DNA of 64,000 nt, taken from sequence record MW272540.1, one strand, 5' to 3'. Positions 4,759-53,699 of this stretch are shown piece by piece; position 1 is the first letter of the stretch; each line of letters opens with the position of its first letter. Under the pieces are notes generated by a model, which did no database searches, was not told the DNA's origin, and saw nothing but the letters and a program-made list of their open reading frames with translations. The translations under genes were made by a program, and so were the position numbers.

Positions 4759-4787
4759 TGCGAATTTTGCTCATGACCTTTTTTTTG
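4759..4787 (+). terminator. Rho-independent terminator
   Basis: GGTCATG-loop-CATGACC followed by a T run. Confidence 0.7.
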
Positions 4788-4806
4788 AAAAACGGAGTGG
4801 TTATAT

Positions 4807-5838
4807 ATGATCGGGTATATATTAAAGAAAGATGATTTGCGTACTATAGAAGTAATTGAATTTGTAGGGTACGACAAAAATATGAAAAATAAATATTATA
4901 AAATAATATGTTCATTATGTTCTAAAGATCAGGAGCTATTCTATAAAGATTTTATAATGTCTAGTTCAAATATCAAAAAAGGTCGCATACCTTGTGGGTG
5001 TTCGTCTTGTCCTAATTGGGATGAAACTCAAACAAAAGTTTTGGTAACAAGAAAGTCAAATAATAGGTTTTATGTTGGTGATTATGATAGTTACATAGGA
5101 AGAAACACGAAAGTGAATCTAACTTGCATTAAATGTAATCATAAATGGAAACCTTCAGTTTCTAGTATATTATCCGGTAAAGGGTGTGATAAATGTGCAA
5201 GAAAGCAATCATCCATCGATAGGTCAAACAAAAAAGCGGAAGGATACCTAATAAAATATCTGTCTGAGAAAGGATATATTTTTGTTGGGTGGGAATTTGG
5301 AAAATACGAAAACACGTTTTCTAAATTCCAGTTTATGTGCCCAATACATGGTGAAAAATGGGGAACATACAACAATATCATAAACCACAAAAGAGGTTGT
5401 TCAGATTGTACCGATAAAGGTGGTGGATTCGACAGGACATCAGATGTTTCATACCTATACTTGGTTGAATGGACCAATGACATGGGATATTCATGGTTGA
5501 AATATGGTATAACAAATAATATGTCAAGAAGAATTAAACAGATTAAAAATGAAAACTTAAGAAAAAATGGTAGGGTATTGTTAAACAGAATACTGCATGT
5601 TTTTACCGGTTCTGGTGGTGATATAGCAAGTATAGAATCTTCTATAAAAAATCTGGTAGGAAAATCCCCAACAAATAAATCAGAAATGTATAGTGGGTTT
5701 ACTGAGTGTACAAGCAAGAATAACCTGTCAAAAATAATTTCATTAATTTCAGAAAATCATTTGCAAGAGATACCCTATGATGGTACTATAGACATCGTTG
5801 AGAAAAGGTCACCAAATGAGGTTGAAGATGACGAATGA
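4807..5838 (+). mobile_element. Putative free-standing homing endonuclease (Zn-ribbon repeats plus GIY-YIG-like C-terminus)
   Basis: Several CxxC units (CSLC, CGCSSC, CIKC..CDKC, CPIHG..CSDC) then YLYLVEW...LKYGITNNMSRRIKQ. Confidence 0.7.
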
Positions 5839-6334
5839 ACAAATTAACATTGTTATGAACAATTCGACCAGATTATTATTCGATCTCGATGGGGTACAAG
5901 CCGACTGGTGTATGGCGTTTGACCTTCGGTTTGGTGCTGGTGCTTCTGAACAGTTTGACCTTCTTGAGAAAGAAGACAAGGACAATATCAAAACCGAGCT
6001 GGCAAATGGTGATTTCTATCGACGTTTACCAGTTATGGAAAAGGGTGTTTCTCTGGTCATTGAAATGGTTCGTCGTGGTCGTGATGTTTCTATTTTGACT
6101 AGCGTTGGTCGTCAAAACCCAGAAAATGTAGTGCGTCAGAAAAAAGCTTGGATTTCTGATGTTTACCCAGCTGATGTTGCTAAGGTTCTCCTCGAAAACT
6201 TCTTCTTTACTCTGTGTAGTGAGGATAAAGCGGCCTTTGCGAGACCGGATATCTGTCTGATTGATGACCGTGAAAAGAGCCGCAAACCATTCATCGCTGC
6301 GGGCGGTATGGCCATCGATATCGGGGATCTCTGA
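5828..6334 (+). CDS. HAD-family 5'(3')-nucleotidase/phosphatase
   Basis: Motif I FDLDGVQAD, ILTS, motif IV LIDDREK. Confidence 0.75.
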   Translation: MTNEQINIVMNNSTRLLFDLDGVQADWCMAFDLRFGAGASEQFDLLEKEDKDNIKTELANGDFYRRLPVMEKGVSLVIEMVRRGRDVSILTSVGRQNPENVVRQKKAWISDVYPADVAKVLLENFFFTLCSEDKAAFARPDICLIDDREKSRKPFIAAGGMAIDIGDL

Positions 6335-6555
6335 TGGAAAATTTATTGTTGACAGTGAATATGATATCTGCTTCAATTGGTTTCATGGCAATATTGATTT
6401 TTGGAGACCATTTTTCTGAAAGACCTAATGTCCACCGAGGAATTTTGTTGGTGGTAAGTATTACCGTTTTCTTTGGGTATCTATGGTATGACATTTCATT
6501 CTATTATCCAGTAGGAATGTGTTTTTATTCTTTAATCTTAAAACTGAGGAATTAA
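6334..6555 (+). CDS. Small membrane protein (2 predicted TM helices)
   Basis: Two hydrophobic stretches; stop/start overlap with the upstream gene. Confidence 0.55.
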   Translation: MENLLLTVNMISASIGFMAILIFGDHFSERPNVHRGILLVVSITVFFGYLWYDISFYYPVGMCFYSLILKLRN

Positions 6556-6557
6556 TT

Positions 6558-6866
6558 ATGGAAATGTTTTTGAAAACTGCATTGTTTGGTGTTGTGGTTT
6601 TTTCTTTGGGGTGGTTGATTGATTGGTATTTTCATGGTCGAACCCAACCAGAAGAGAAAACTAAAAAAATTGTGTTGTCAAACACAGACAATCAGCGTAA
6701 AATGAAAAACGAATATAATAAACAAGTTCTGGTGCACAAAAAGCAGGAAAGCCAGAACAAGACACATAGTCGTGTTCTGCACACGGAGATTAAAGAAACT
6801 CCAAAAATCCATCCAGTAATGGCAAACTTTTTAAACAAACTTTATCAAGAAGGTAAAAATAAATGA
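6558..6866 (+). CDS. Hypothetical protein with N-terminal TM anchor
   Basis: GAGG SD; hydrophobic ALFGVVVFSLGWLIDWYF. Confidence 0.6.
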   Translation: MEMFLKTALFGVVVFSLGWLIDWYFHGRTQPEEKTKKIVLSNTDNQRKMKNEYNKQVLVHKKQESQNKTHSRVLHTEIKETPKIHPVMANFLNKLYQEGKNK

Positions 6867-7198
6867 GCGTAGGAATTCGCCCGGAATATCCAAACATTGT
6901 GTTTTTTAAAAATTCAGATGGAACATTCTCTAATCAATTTGCTTGGCGAAACGATAAAGGTCGAGATGCAGAAGCACTCCCGATAAAAATCAAGTCTTAT
7001 GAAGATCTGGAAGAACAGTGTCGTATTGTTAACGAAGGTCTAAAATATTTTGTGTGTTCTTCATGTGGGGTCGCACAAGATGAAGATCAATTTGCAGGCT
7101 TTGTATTTGCTGCAAAATATTGCAGTGGTTGTAAAAACACCAAAAAACAAGTTGCAAGTGCCATCAAAGAAAGCAAACAACCCGGTTTTTATAGTTAA
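6863..7198 (+). CDS. Hypothetical Zn-finger protein
   Basis: CSSC-x17-CSGC; ATGA coupling to the upstream gene. Confidence 0.6.
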   Translation: MSVGIRPEYPNIVFFKNSDGTFSNQFAWRNDKGRDAEALPIKIKSYEDLEEQCRIVNEGLKYFVCSSCGVAQDEDQFAGFVFAAKYCSGCKNTKKQVASAIKESKQPGFYS

Positions 7199-7210
7199 GG
7201 AGAAATAAAA

Positions 7211-8212
7211 ATGATTTTTGTAAAATATAATTCGCTTGAGAACCATTATCGTCAAAACGTGATTGATTCATTTGTACAGTCGGGATATACATCACCCGGC
7301 GTAGAATGGATTGCAATGGAGAAGATCCACGGTACAAACTTTCAAATTGCTGTAGATGATAATTATGTACAGGCTGGGCGACGGACCGACCTTCTGGGAG
7401 ATTTCGACCAGTTTTATGAAGCGGACCTGATTGTTAAGAAATATCACGATAATGCTCGGAATGTTTACAATTTTGTAAAATATCATTATCCAGCCGCCAC
7501 ACAGATTACAATTTTTGGTGAGTATGCAGGTAACCTGACTACTGGTAAGATGATCCAAAAAGAAGTAGAGTATGGTGAACAAGATTTTTACGTGTTTGAT
7601 GTTTTCGTCTTCTCAGGTGATGAAGGGATGTATCTTTCCCATGATTTTGTTATGATGGCGATTGATGGTAACTTTAAACATGCACCAATTATCTATCGAG
7701 GTGATTTTGAAGGTGTCACAAAACTCCCGAACGACTTCCAATCCGTTGTTATCCCAAGTAACAAAGCCGGGAAATTTGGTCTGGTTCAAGGGACCGATAA
7801 CACCGCAGAGGGTTTTGTTGCTAAAACTGTAGAACCGCACTACACCCGCCATGGTCGGACTATTTTCAAATCGAAAAACTCTAAGTTTACGGAGAAAGAG
7901 AAATCCGATAAGCCGGTAAAGGTAAAAGAACCTCTCGGGGAATCCGACCTTGCAATGGTACATGAGATTGCAGAATACATCACGGTAAACCGACTCAAAA
8001 ACGTACTCAGTAAGATTGGTATCCCAACCACTAAAGAGTTTGGTAAAGTTTCCGGTAACCTTTCTAAGGATGCAATTGAGGACTTTACAAAGGATACAGA
8101 AAAGAGTCTTCGTGATGCGGAACGCCCGTCTGATGTGGGTAAAGCAGTGAACAACCTTTCCGGGGAACTGGTTCGGGAACACTGGATGAACATTCTTGAT
8201 GGAAATTTCTAA
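7211..8212 (+). CDS. rnlB: RNA ligase 2
   Basis: Motif I EKIHGTNF, FGEYAG, FYVFDV, EGFV, FKSKNSKF; C-domain RLKNVLSKIG. Confidence 0.92.
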   Translation: MIFVKYNSLENHYRQNVIDSFVQSGYTSPGVEWIAMEKIHGTNFQIAVDDNYVQAGRRTDLLGDFDQFYEADLIVKKYHDNARNVYNFVKYHYPAATQITIFGEYAGNLTTGKMIQKEVEYGEQDFYVFDVFVFSGDEGMYLSHDFVMMAIDGNFKHAPIIYRGDFEGVTKLPNDFQSVVIPSNKAGKFGLVQGTDNTAEGFVAKTVEPHYTRHGRTIFKSKNSKFTEKEKSDKPVKVKEPLGESDLAMVHEIAEYITVNRLKNVLSKIGIPTTKEFGKVSGNLSKDAIEDFTKDTEKSLRDAERPSDVGKAVNNLSGELVREHWMNILDGNF

Positions 8213-9219: not shown

Positions 9220-9993
9220 ATGGCTAAAAAAGAAGAACTAAAGGAATTTGACCTTGGTGTAATCAATGAGATTGTGGAATCTAATACCGCACCAGAAGCA
9301 AAGGCTAAAATCCAAACCTATGCAAAAGAGTGTGGGTTTAAGATCAGTAAATCAAATATTTCAGTTGACGATATGATCCAAAAATTGCTTGAAATGGCTG
9401 ACGAAAAAGAAAACGAGAAGCTGAATGCAAGCCCTATGGACAAAGTACCAACTCCAAAGGTCGATGTGGAATATAAACCGTCAGAGACAAAGGTTGAGGT
9501 TCCAGTTGAACCAATGGAACCAATCGGTTATAATCCCCCAGAGGTTGAGTTTGAAAAACTTACTGAAGCGATTCAGAAAGAAGAGTTGTATATTAAAGAA
9601 AAACTATCTATGGATGGTGTTGGTATTCCCACGGCAGATGAGCTTATAAAGACTTCTGGTGAACTGTACACACCATCAGTACCAGAGGATGGGAAATCTG
9701 TAGAAGTCGCTAAAACCGCAGCCAGTGAGCCGGAGAAAGTCGATCTTGATTGGATGACTGGGTTTACTCCAAAAACTTCTTTGATTGGCGTAACCGGGAA
9801 ACAGTATATGAACTGTCCATATTGGATTCTTGATTGGATTCTTGAAACAGGACCCACTTGGAAATCAAAGATTTCTGAAAATCCACGTGTATCGGACCAT
9901 GCAATGTTGAAGACTGTTCTTTATTACATTGTAATTAACGGTTCTGTTACCGTGCGAGAAAGTCGGAATTCCCAGTATCATACACTTTATTAA
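9220..9993 (+). CDS. inh: Inhibitor of prohead protease
   Basis: C-terminal PYWILDWI...WK...VLYYIVINGSVTVRESRNS matches T4 Inh; CTAAATA at 9186. Confidence 0.85.
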   Translation: MAKKEELKEFDLGVINEIVESNTAPEAKAKIQTYAKECGFKISKSNISVDDMIQKLLEMADEKENEKLNASPMDKVPTPKVDVEYKPSETKVEVPVEPMEPIGYNPPEVEFEKLTEAIQKEELYIKEKLSMDGVGIPTADELIKTSGELYTPSVPEDGKSVEVAKTAASEPEKVDLDWMTGFTPKTSLIGVTGKQYMNCPYWILDWILETGPTWKSKISENPRVSDHAMLKTVLYYIVINGSVTVRESRNSQYHTLY

Positions 9994-9997
9994 AATT

Positions 9998-10023
9998 AAG
10001 CCATCCTACTGGGTGGCTTTTTT
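9998..10023 (+). terminator. Rho-independent terminator
   Basis: AGCCATCC-tact-GGGTGGCT followed by a T run. Confidence 0.75.
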
Positions 10024-10076
10024 GATCCCTAAATATAGAATGGTCTATTTTGGCCTGTATTTAGAAGGATTAATAA

Positions 10077-10280
10077 ATGTATAGATTCACACAAGCAAAT
10101 CATGATACCTTTTTATTGACTGGTTATGAAGGGGATTATGACAAGGTAATAAGTCGGATCGACTTACATTTAGAAGAGATGTTAACTCCCTATTTCAGGG
10201 ATGGATTTAAGGTGGTTGTATTTTGTTCTAGTGCGGATAAGTTTATTTTATTAGAAAAGAACAAAACTAGTGTTTTTTAA
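10077..10280 (+). CDS. Hypothetical protein, 67 aa
   Basis: AAGGA SD; CTAAATA at 10029. Confidence 0.55.
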   Translation: MYRFTQANHDTFLLTGYEGDYDKVISRIDLHLEEMLTPYFRDGFKVVVFCSSADKFILLEKNKTSVF

Positions 10281-10355
10281 ATTATAACATGGTAGAATGA
10301 TATTCTTAATTAAAATTGGATGGATACTTTTTCATCCAATTTTGATTATTTTTTG

Positions 10356-10471
10356 ATCAAAATATTAGTTTCAATTGTAATCAAACTATAGATTCTCTAT
10401 AAGTATTTATATAGAAGATCTATAATTAGAACGAACGAAGTGAGTCGCCGGAGGCGGTTCGCTACGCTCAC
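10356..10471. repeat. Composite repeat copy 1: AT-rich block B (10356-10431) plus 41-bp block A (10431-10471)
   Basis: A (ACGAACGAAGTGAGTCGCCGGAGGCGGTTCGCTACGCTCAC) is identical to 53572-53612; B is a near-identical reverse complement of about 53621-53699. Confidence 0.9.
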
Positions 10472-10508
10472 TATTAATTTATGTATTTAGATGTGTTAGA
10501 ATGACTGT

Positions 10509-11075
10509 ATGAAAAGACGAATCGTAACTCTAATAGGTACTAGATACCCACAAAAAGAATATCAAGACCTAATGGTGCGCATCGGAAAGGCTTTTTCTGA
10601 AAAAGGATATGGTGCTCGTTCTGGTGGTGCTATTGGTTCTGATACTCTATTTTTACAAGAATATGATCCTAAGCTAACTATCATTTATAGACCCGATGAT
10701 AGACCCGGATGTGTGAATGTAAAGAATCATGAAAATTATTATGAATTTGAACTTATTGCCTCACGTGTTCATTGTTTAGGTTCTGGTGTTGGATGGGAAT
10801 TTATGCCTATAGGACATCAAGAACTTCACGCAAGAAATGTACCCCAAGTAATGGGTCTGAATCTAAAAACGTATTCAGATCTTGTGGTGTTCTGTGCCGA
10901 TGAAAATCATCGTGGTACGGTTTCTGGTGGAACAGCAACCGCTGTTAAAATAGCCCGGTCCTTAAATATTCCAACTATCAATATTATGAATGACGAGCAA
11001 AGAAAGAAGCTTTGTCAATGGCTAAAAATAGAAGATATACCGAAATATGAAAAGGTGGACATTTTCAACCTCTAA
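10509..11075 (+). CDS. SLOG-superfamily (DprA/Smf-like) nucleotide-binding protein
   Basis: LIGTR, RSGGAIGSD, LHARN, LVVF, SGGTATAVKIARSLNIP. Confidence 0.75.
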   Translation: MKRRIVTLIGTRYPQKEYQDLMVRIGKAFSEKGYGARSGGAIGSDTLFLQEYDPKLTIIYRPDDRPGCVNVKNHENYYEFELIASRVHCLGSGVGWEFMPIGHQELHARNVPQVMGLNLKTYSDLVVFCADENHRGTVSGGTATAVKIARSLNIPTINIMNDEQRKKLCQWLKIEDIPKYEKVDIFNL

Positions 11076-15696: not shown

Positions 15697-16383
15697 TTAA
15701 CTTTTTAATGCTTCGATTAAATTCTTAATCGCCTCATCATCTGTATTATTTAGGGGTTCATTTTTTGACTCATTCATACGATAAGCATTTGTATAAGCAC
15801 TAGGAGCACTCGGACCCCAAACAACGTCAACACCAACAGTTAGTTTATATCCCTCTTGAACCTCATTAAGCCCCTTAGAATTACGTTTTAGAGACCCCAG
15901 TCCACGAGAACTAACACCGGGAACCCAACCAGCGCGAATTAAAGCCGCAACTTTATCACCTTCTGCACCATCACCCTCGACAATTCTAGCCTTACCCCAA
16001 ACATCATTTCCTTTCCACCATAGTTTTTCAATAACCAAGGCAGCATGTTTAGGATCTGGATAAGATCTATTTCCGGGGTGATTAAGTTCACCAATAGATT
16101 GTTTGATATTAACTTGCTCTTTTATATATTTATCAACTGCCTTTTCCAAAATCTTTTTCGGATAAATCCGACCATTTCCATTTGGAATTTCAGCTTGAAG
16201 GAAAATACCCTCTATATACAAATTACCAGTATCTTTATCGTTGTATGATTCAACGAGTAACCCTTTACCATTACTCTCTGAAACACCTTCAGGACAACCC
16301 CAATTTTCAATTAGGAGTTTAACGTCTGATGGTTTTCCCGAATCTCTTCCTTCCCAAGTTTCGTTTATTGTGTCCATGATCAA
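15697..16383 (-). CDS. gp21: Prohead protease
   Basis: LYIEGIFLQAE, GELNHP, GWVPGVSSRGLG, VDVVWGPSAP. Confidence 0.95.
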   Translation of the reverse strand: MIMDTINETWEGRDSGKPSDVKLLIENWGCPEGVSESNGKGLLVESYNDKDTGNLYIEGIFLQAEIPNGNGRIYPKKILEKAVDKYIKEQVNIKQSIGELNHPGNRSYPDPKHAALVIEKLWWKGNDVWGKARIVEGDGAEGDKVAALIRAGWVPGVSSRGLGSLKRNSKGLNEVQEGYKLTVGVDVVWGPSAPSAYTNAYRMNESKNEPLNNTDDEAIKNLIEALKS

Positions 16384-53530: not shown

Positions 53531-53559
53531 AAACCCGGATCTAACGATCTGGGTTTTTT
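53531..53559 (+). terminator. Rho-independent terminator
   Basis: AAACCCGGATC-taac-GATCTGGGTTTTTT. Confidence 0.8.
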
Positions 53560-53571
53560 GTTATCTAAAAC

Positions 53572-53699
53572 ACGAACGAAGTGAGTCGCCGGAGGCGGTT
53601 CGCTACGCTCACAGATTACTTTCTAATTATAGATCTTCTATATAAATACTTATAGAAACTTTATAGTTTGATTGCAAGTGAAACTAATATTTTTTGATT
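53572..53699. repeat. Composite repeat copy 2: block A (53572-53612) plus reverse-complement block B (53621-53699)
   Basis: See copy 1; contains TATAAATA at 53641. Confidence 0.9.

Follow-up and report, generated by a model that had tools for sequence, protein, structure and literature searches.

What is the role of a two-part non-coding element that occurs twice in a stretch of phage DNA, at sites 43 kb apart, with one of its parts turned around between the copies? The stretch analysed, which we call the window, comprises 64,000 nucleotides of the sequence record MW272540.1 (Aeromonas phage ZPAH1); a window position plus 124000 gives the coordinate in the record. Both copies of the element match ZPAH1, a T4-like phage (Straboviridae, Emmerichvirinae) with a genome of 231 kb, at 100%. 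The copy at 10.4 kb is flanked by a small hypothetical gene and a SLOG/DprA-like gene, and that at 53.6 kb by the genes for the baseplate-tail tube initiator and the baseplate hub. A first-pass annotation had suggested a replication origin or priming signal, a recombination site or a small RNA, and had attributed the identity of the copies to selection or to recent mobility.

The repeats are as that annotation had described them. Block A is repeated exactly in direct orientation, with 41 of 41 nucleotides identical between 10431-10471 and 53572-53612. The copies of block B are inverted repeats of one another (10359-10444 and 53608-53693; 86 nt with 87% complementarity), and comparison of B alone between the copies by BLAST gave 93% identity over 73 nt. 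A is inverted relative to B between the 10.4-kb and 53.6-kb copies. The occurrence of an exact 41-nt repeat with an adjoining 73-nt repeat within 64 kb is far beyond chance. The GTGAG/CTCAC ends, the inner GC hairpin and the TATAG-type repeats are all present, as is TATAAATA within B (10404-10411 on the minus strand; 53641-53648 on the plus strand). Using repeat comparison, BLAST, an alignment of 36 units and duplex stability, module B of the 10.4-kb copy is placed at 10366-10430 on the plus strand, followed by module A (10431-10471, plus strand), a 41-nt irregular GC hairpin that is flipped relative to the usual layout of B and A. The 53.6-kb copy comprises the identical A (53572-53612, plus strand) and a B on the minus strand (53622-53686), together forming the layout that is usual in the relatives, read on the other strand, i.e., B and then A in its A(-) sense.

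How many such units does the phage carry? The annotation had implied two, but a search of the whole record found exactly six in ZPAH1, each with B and A, at 16.0, 67.3, 110.8, 134.4, 177.6 and 209.5 kb of the record; the fourth and fifth are those of the window. BLASTN across the genome and its relatives revealed the element at syntenic intergenic sites in 10 of 10 relatives (Aswh_1, CC2, AS-zj, P19, AS-sw, AS-yj, AsSzw2, Aszh-1, 65 and avDM6), with four to six units in each. Judging synteny by distances and flanks, four sites are common to every lineage; the 67-kb-type site is missing in phage 65, and the 209-kb-type site in both 65 and avDM6. In 65 and avDM6 the counterpart of the 177-kb unit has B with other GC hairpins in place of A. 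In phage 65 this is the B without A at record 102,151-102,215; in avDM6 the other hairpins lie between two B modules of inverted orientation (record 78,492-78,697).

The element appears to be confined to this group of phages. Significant matches in the phage collection came from 20 records, all of them Emmerichvirinae Aeromonas phages (65/CC2 group), and a pattern scan of IMG/VR with the right arm of B returned only 65, CC2 and AS-zj together with chance AT-rich matches; neither the collection search nor the IMG/VR scan found a similar element outside the Emmerichvirinae. Matches of the B core to the left ends of Acinetobacter Friunavirus genomes (E 0.09-0.3) fall in a repetitive AT-rich region and were judged to be chance. 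A literature search found no paper on the element.

The units are dispersed through the ZPAH1 genome with gaps of 24-51 kb, and this spacing is more even than random (P = 0.009 for the minimum gap, 0.004 for the maximum gap and 0.002 for the variance). The evenness is similar in CC2, which shares ancestry with ZPAH1 and is not independent of it; the even spacing is therefore in effect one observation. Both copies in the window lie 1-2.6 kb from turning points of the cumulative GC skew (at about 11 kb and 51 kb), a proximity that carries little weight because skew follows gene direction here. A positional match of the units to the origins of T4 was too loose to count.

Module B is about 65 nt long and 79% A+T (about 21% G+C). 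It begins with a conserved asymmetric left box (10366-10385 on the plus strand in the 10.4-kb copy), followed by an imperfect, AT-rich palindrome with 21-nt arms that are 8 nt apart and 76-81% complementary (10381-10401 and 10410-10430). The arms are longer in the 110-kb unit, at 35 nt; an apparent flip of B there was an artefact of this full 35-nt-arm palindrome, and the layout of the unit is the usual one. The module carries two -10-like hexamers. In the 10.4-kb copy a TATAAT at the right end faces A, and a TATAnT in the left arm, on the other strand, faces outward. Across the 36 aligned units the left box, the inner dyad arms and the two outward-facing hexamers are invariant, with hexamer variation restricted to tolerated positions. 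Only two copies depart from TATAAT in the right hexamer (TACAGT and TACACT), and both are still TAnnnT; the left hexamer takes all four bases at position 5 with the rest unchanged. By nearest-neighbour calculation over 40, 60 and 80 bp, the two B copies of the window rank from second to fourth among the least stable duplexes in the 64 kb, and both have the character of an AT-rich DNA unwinding element, as in T4-type oriF/oriG.

Is B held in place by selection? It is better conserved than the intergenic DNA around it, and its identity across genera is 78-90%, compared with only about 70-78% for genes. Together with the syntenic positions in every relative, this upholds selection, one of the two explanations that had been offered for the identity of the copies. 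B from ZPAH1 and B from 65 are identical at a fraction of 0.78 of positions, and this value is the same at orthologous and non-orthologous loci; for the close pair 65 and avDM6 the identity is 0.98 at the same locus and 0.87 at different loci. Changes in the dyad core that are specific to a lineage are common to all the copies of that lineage. The value of 0.78 for any pairing of loci indicates that lineage-specific changes in B spread to all copies over long times, as would be expected from gene conversion, or from co-evolution of the sites with one common binding factor.

Module A is an irregular hairpin of 41-46 nt, with conserved outer arms that include fixed mismatches, a 4-bp G+C top stem and a loop of 3-4 nt. 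It is separated from the end of B by a spacer of 0 to 13 nt. Four copies of A are identical within ZPAH1 and four within CC2, and the sequences differ between these genomes. Among 13 distinct variants the top stem has at least five sequences with pairing retained by compensation, and overall 90% of cells pair, compared with 31-44% when the partner is slid. A pseudoknot was considered as an alternative to the nested fold; either gives 90% pairing, only the top stem covaries, and the two are therefore inseparable. The 10.4-kb A folded as RNA has a calculated free energy of -16.8 kcal/mol (z = -2.0), and as RNA the module is more stable than shuffled sequences in both senses (z from -1.1 to -4.8 for A(+), and from -0.8 to -3.3 for the other sense). 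Folded as DNA, the ZPAH1 variant does not differ from shuffles in stability (z about 0; -0.2).

Which of the two layouts is ancestral at the 10.4-kb site? The usual layout is found there in CC2 and its relatives, in 65 and in avDM6, and A is turned only in ZPAH1 and Aswh_1, with the breakpoints exactly at the ends of A. On this comparison of layouts, the 10.4-kb copy is the derived, flipped form. There has been a second, older flip of A, which is common to every phage that has the 209-kb-type unit. This makes two events in the history of the family, and no running switch.

On one side of each unit is the end or terminator of a gene, and on the other the promoter of the gene that follows. The 10.4-kb unit lies directly behind the intrinsic terminator hairpin of the upstream gene (10307-10348, plus strand), which has A and T runs at its sides and is kept in the relatives; the 53.6-kb unit lies directly behind the intrinsic terminator of the baseplate-tail tube initiator gene (53531-53556, plus strand). 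The orientation of the units relative to the flanking genes varies, the right hexamer of B facing the next gene at four of the six ZPAH1 loci and away from it at two. An early or late promoter belongs to the downstream gene itself at five of the six loci, as exemplified by the extended -10 early-type promoter of the SLOG/DprA-like gene at 10494-10502 (plus strand). A directly adjoins a ribosome site and start codon at the 16-kb-type locus alone, an arrangement common to all five lineages.

Two further structures were observed beside units. An extended -10 promoter-like site lies at 10289-10297, with the terminator hairpin no more than 10 nt beyond it, and upstream of the unit the segment 10289-10348 could act as an attenuator or give a very short transcript. 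Adjacent to the 16-kb unit is a large inverted repeat (record 16,045-16,135), with arms of about 26 bp and a loop of ~45 nt. CC2 and phage 65 keep this structure with different arm sequences, and its retention with changed arms makes it a candidate structured RNA or terminator.

Does the unit correspond to one of the ordinary signals of gene expression? A scan with the sigma-70 consensus found no promoter common to both window copies. The early-type promoters of ZPAH1 are of the extended -10 type, and B, having neither a -35 box nor a TG extension, does not match them. The late-promoter core of ZPAH1 is CTAAATA, which occurs 32 times in the window compared with about 21 in shuffles; 19 of the 32 are in intergenic DNA, which makes up 7.5% of the window, and 21 lie 20-82 nt before a gene start on the same strand. 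C's commonly stand before this core, and in some cases a GC hairpin; the core itself differs from the T4 motif TATAAATA. No CTAAATA is present inside B. The TATAAATA in B, which the annotation had described as pointing away from A in both copies, is not enriched (6 occurrences compared with 7.3 expected) and is absent from the B of 65 and avDM6; since the late motif of ZPAH1 is CTAAATA, it is not supported as a late promoter. Nor is A an intrinsic terminator. It has no T run, and was not called by a scan that does call the adjoining terminators at 10307-10348 and 53531-53556. A search of Rfam over the units at the six ZPAH1 loci, with E up to 1, gave no match.

The reading that we tentatively favour is that the unit is an orientation-independent DNA site at which the duplex opens and transcription or replication starts, and hence a candidate origin. 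A replication origin was among the suggestions of the first-pass annotation, and the grounds for preferring it are indirect, namely the copy number, the even spacing, the independence of orientation and the extreme instability of the duplex. More generally, copies that are few, even, stable, orientation-independent and easily melted, with a dyad core that changes in concert and a poor fit to the usual classes, point to a genome-wide cis-acting DNA site, and it is this combination of features that leads us to prefer such a site to an ordinary expression signal or a selfish insert. A start primed by transcription is favoured because the best-understood origins of T4 consist of a promoter and an unwinding element.

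How might such a site work? The unit would act as double-stranded DNA regardless of its orientation. The dyad core of B would bind a symmetric factor of the phage or host, and B melts more easily than almost any stretch nearby. The two outward-facing TAnnnT hexamers, ~35 bp apart around the core, could then let RNA polymerase initiate to either side with no need of a -35 box; to the right, it would begin at the foot of the GC hairpin A. We propose that A can flip without loss because it forms a hairpin in either orientation. By analogy with oriF and oriG of T4, and with the dispersed palindromic homologous regions (hrs) of baculoviruses, the six evenly spaced units would serve as replication-start sites, possibly doubling as special promoters. 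It is from the observed anatomy, copy number, conservation, spacing and instability of the units, and their misfit to ordinary promoter and terminator classes, that we infer factor binding, transcription starts and origin activity.

Several observations count against the origin reading. The hexamers lie inside the unwinding element, unlike T4, where the promoter is upstream of it. AsiA is present in ZPAH1, yet no MotA-type activator was detected; a Pfam search gave no match to MotA in ZPAH1, and gave none in the control genomes either. The product encoded at the position of T4 motA (asiA-gene 52 interval; record 206,686-207,135) was considered as an analogue and rejected, being a 149-aa membrane protein with hydrophobic segments. 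Moreover the strict conservation of the arms of A is unexplained if any hairpin will do.

A purely transcriptional reading, itself doubtful, is nearly as likely as the origin-like one. The unit would then be a cassette resembling the promoter-early stem-loops (PeSLs) of the T4-type phages RB49/phi1, PST/T4 and nt-1/KVP40 (PMC2839356, PMC4122927), with no role in replication. B would be a factor-dependent (middle-like), perhaps bidirectional promoter, and A a 5′-terminal stem-loop that stabilizes the transcript or insulates neighbouring units. The TAnnnT hexamers are conserved, with A beginning 4-13 nt downstream, and the intergenic placement behind terminators is also that of PeSLs (PMC4122927). 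With AsiA present, promoters independent of a -35 box are to be expected, and at the 16-kb locus the position of A against the ribosome site and start codon in five lineages leaves no room for a further promoter. Against this, B has no -35 box, extended -10 or CTAAATA, a sigma-70 promoter common to both copies is lacking, and the downstream genes have promoters of their own at five of the six loci. Two or three of the units face away from the next gene, the conserved 65-85 bp exceeds what a promoter needs, and the six copies are evenly dispersed, unlike the dozens of PeSLs in hyperplastic regions (PMC2839356).

We regard as unlikely an element that acts at the level of RNA, in which a long AU-rich hairpin and the GC hairpin are transcribed and function as a small RNA, a processing site or a stability element. 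The stability of A relative to shuffles as RNA, and not as DNA, does favour an RNA role for this module, and its top stem covaries. The small RNA suggested by the annotation is possible only at the 10.4-kb locus, where an orphan CTAAATA (10484-10490, minus strand) points into A, then B, and then the terminator at 10307-10348. This motif is invariant in five lineages and among the units is restricted to that locus. With the terminator, which is bidirectional, it could give rise there to a late non-coding RNA of about 165 nt. Such a bracket is found at one locus only, however, and the absence of an Rfam match also argues against this explanation. The arm sequences are conserved even though the mixed orientations and the flips of A would make the RNAs of different loci complementary. 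In addition, little read-through RNA is expected when most of the units lie directly behind terminators.

Could the repeat be maintained for its own sake? It might be selfish, or kept up by recombination (a MITE/REP-like repeat, or a linker for modular exchange), and serve no function of the phage, with the flips as by-products of palindrome instability, but we consider this improbable. The homogenization of A into four identical copies in ZPAH1 and four in CC2, different between the two genomes, would be consistent with it, as would the two flips in the family, a join of two unit contexts exactly at a unit in the AS-sw record, and the breaks and Ns of assemblies at units. Yet the sites are syntenic across genera in which genes are about 70-78% identical and B 78-90%, the copy number is steady at four to six, and the copies of 65 and avDM6 evolve locus by locus (0.98 compared with 0.87). 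No target-site duplications common across lineages were found, and a search for the Y1_Tnp transposase, for which the positive control worked, found none in the phage. A mobile element of the MITE or REP type was rejected on these observations, and the recent mobility that the annotation had entertained is not supported, the positions being stable across genera, with no target duplications and no Y1 transposase.

The units have consequences for the assembly of these genomes. Ns are found inside units in the AS-zj and AS-sw records. In AS-sw (record 4,772-7,889) a left context of the 134-kb type, 1.6 kb in length and 98.8% identical to its other copy in AS-sw, is joined to a right context of the 16-kb type exactly at the unit; either a rearrangement through the repeat or a misassembly would explain this. 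Using window positions 9800-11000, close relatives of ZPAH1 were observed in four unrelated DNA runs (X1, X3, X4 and X6), one of them from a retting metagenome. The contigs of these relatives are broken at the unit, where depth exceeds that of the flanks several-fold, as a repeat with six copies would lead one to expect. One contig of X3 runs from A, in its ZPAH1 orientation, into the right-hand flank; a join of that kind is partly present in X1. A search among the runs that contain the element found no RNA run from an infection.

Reversible flipping of A within a phage population, at a programmed invertible switch or a site-specific recombination site, would account for the inversion of A between copies and between orthologous loci, but this is very improbable, and the recombination site of the annotation correspondingly unlikely, given two flips in the history of the family, an orientation that is fixed per locus across many isolates, the ZPAH1 orientation of the X3 contig (and partly of X1), the lack of strand-changing joints in the contigs of the four runs (which hide minor forms) and a length of 41 bp that is too short for recombinase-mediated inversion.

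The element provides a conserved, countable candidate origin or special promoter at six fixed sites, throughout a subfamily of large Aeromonas phages that are used in aquaculture phage work. Even if only regulatory, it is a new repeat family distinct from PeSLs, and in practice it causes these genomes to be broken or wrongly joined in assembly.

How does the unit compare with known systems? Like PeSLs, it is a repeated composite intergenic module of T4-type genomes in which an AT-rich, promoter-like part is combined with a GC stem-loop, placed between transcription units and homogenized within the genome. The differences are substantial. PeSLs have a sigma-70 -35/-10 pair with a spacing of about 17 nt, and B has -10-like hexamers only, with no -35 box. 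The stem-loop of a PeSL is a terminator upstream of the promoter; A does not terminate, and lies downstream of the right hexamer of B in the usual unit. PeSLs have a fixed orientation directly before a gene and are clustered by the dozen in hyperplastic regions, whereas the Aeromonas units are orientation-free, comprise four to six evenly dispersed, stable copies (six in ZPAH1, one of which abuts a start codon) and contain a conserved palindrome of 65-85 bp. The unit may work somewhat like a PeSL, but judged by its sequence it fails each of the defining features tested, and membership of the class was rejected.

Other repeats offer more limited parallels. REP/BIME elements, which are associated with RAYT transposases, are imperfect palindromes of about 35-45 nt with conserved mismatches, intergenic and present in both orientations. 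Module A is likewise a short imperfect palindrome with fixed mismatches, lying between genes in both orientations; it differs in that the phage has no Y1/RAYT gene, and in that A is always coupled to B, in six copies at syntenic sites. The hrs of baculoviruses and the oriS/oriL of herpesviruses, to which a dimeric viral factor binds, are imperfect AT-rich palindromes, dispersed and repeated, and act as orientation-independent enhancers and/or origins. The Aeromonas units recall them as dispersed imperfect AT-rich palindromes, but the analogy is one of design only, hrs and oriS/oriL belonging to eukaryotic viruses with unrelated sequences and proteins. We know of no T4-type origins that have been mapped outside T4 itself, nor of a means of predicting them in its relatives.

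In design the unit also resembles oriF (uvsY) and oriG (34) of T4, in which a promoter is combined with a DNA unwinding element and the transcript primes synthesis via an R-loop (PMC3016281). The Aeromonas unit resembles these in being compact (~100 bp), with promoter-like -10 elements and an easily unwound AT-rich stretch, and in occupying five to six sites in a genome at distances of tens of kb, some of them near strand-switch or skew turning points; oriE, oriF and oriG of T4 are also near turning points of the cumulative GC skew (PMC3016281). The unwinding element of T4 is downstream of the promoter, in contrast to hexamers that are inside the AT-rich palindrome, and T4 uses MotA-dependent promoters, where the ZPAH1 units have no Mot box and MotA is undetectable. 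The origins of T4 share no motif and the Aeromonas units share one sequence, and origins with a common motif would for that reason be a departure from T4 (PMC3016281). It is a rather doubtful possibility that the Emmerichvirinae mark their origins with one shared unit, comprising an AT-rich dyad, divergent starts and a GC hairpin, set at six places at even intervals. If so, the T4 superfamily would gain its first origins that are sequence-defined and predictable; bound by a phage factor, they would be the counterpart, in a prokaryotic virus, of the baculovirus hr elements.
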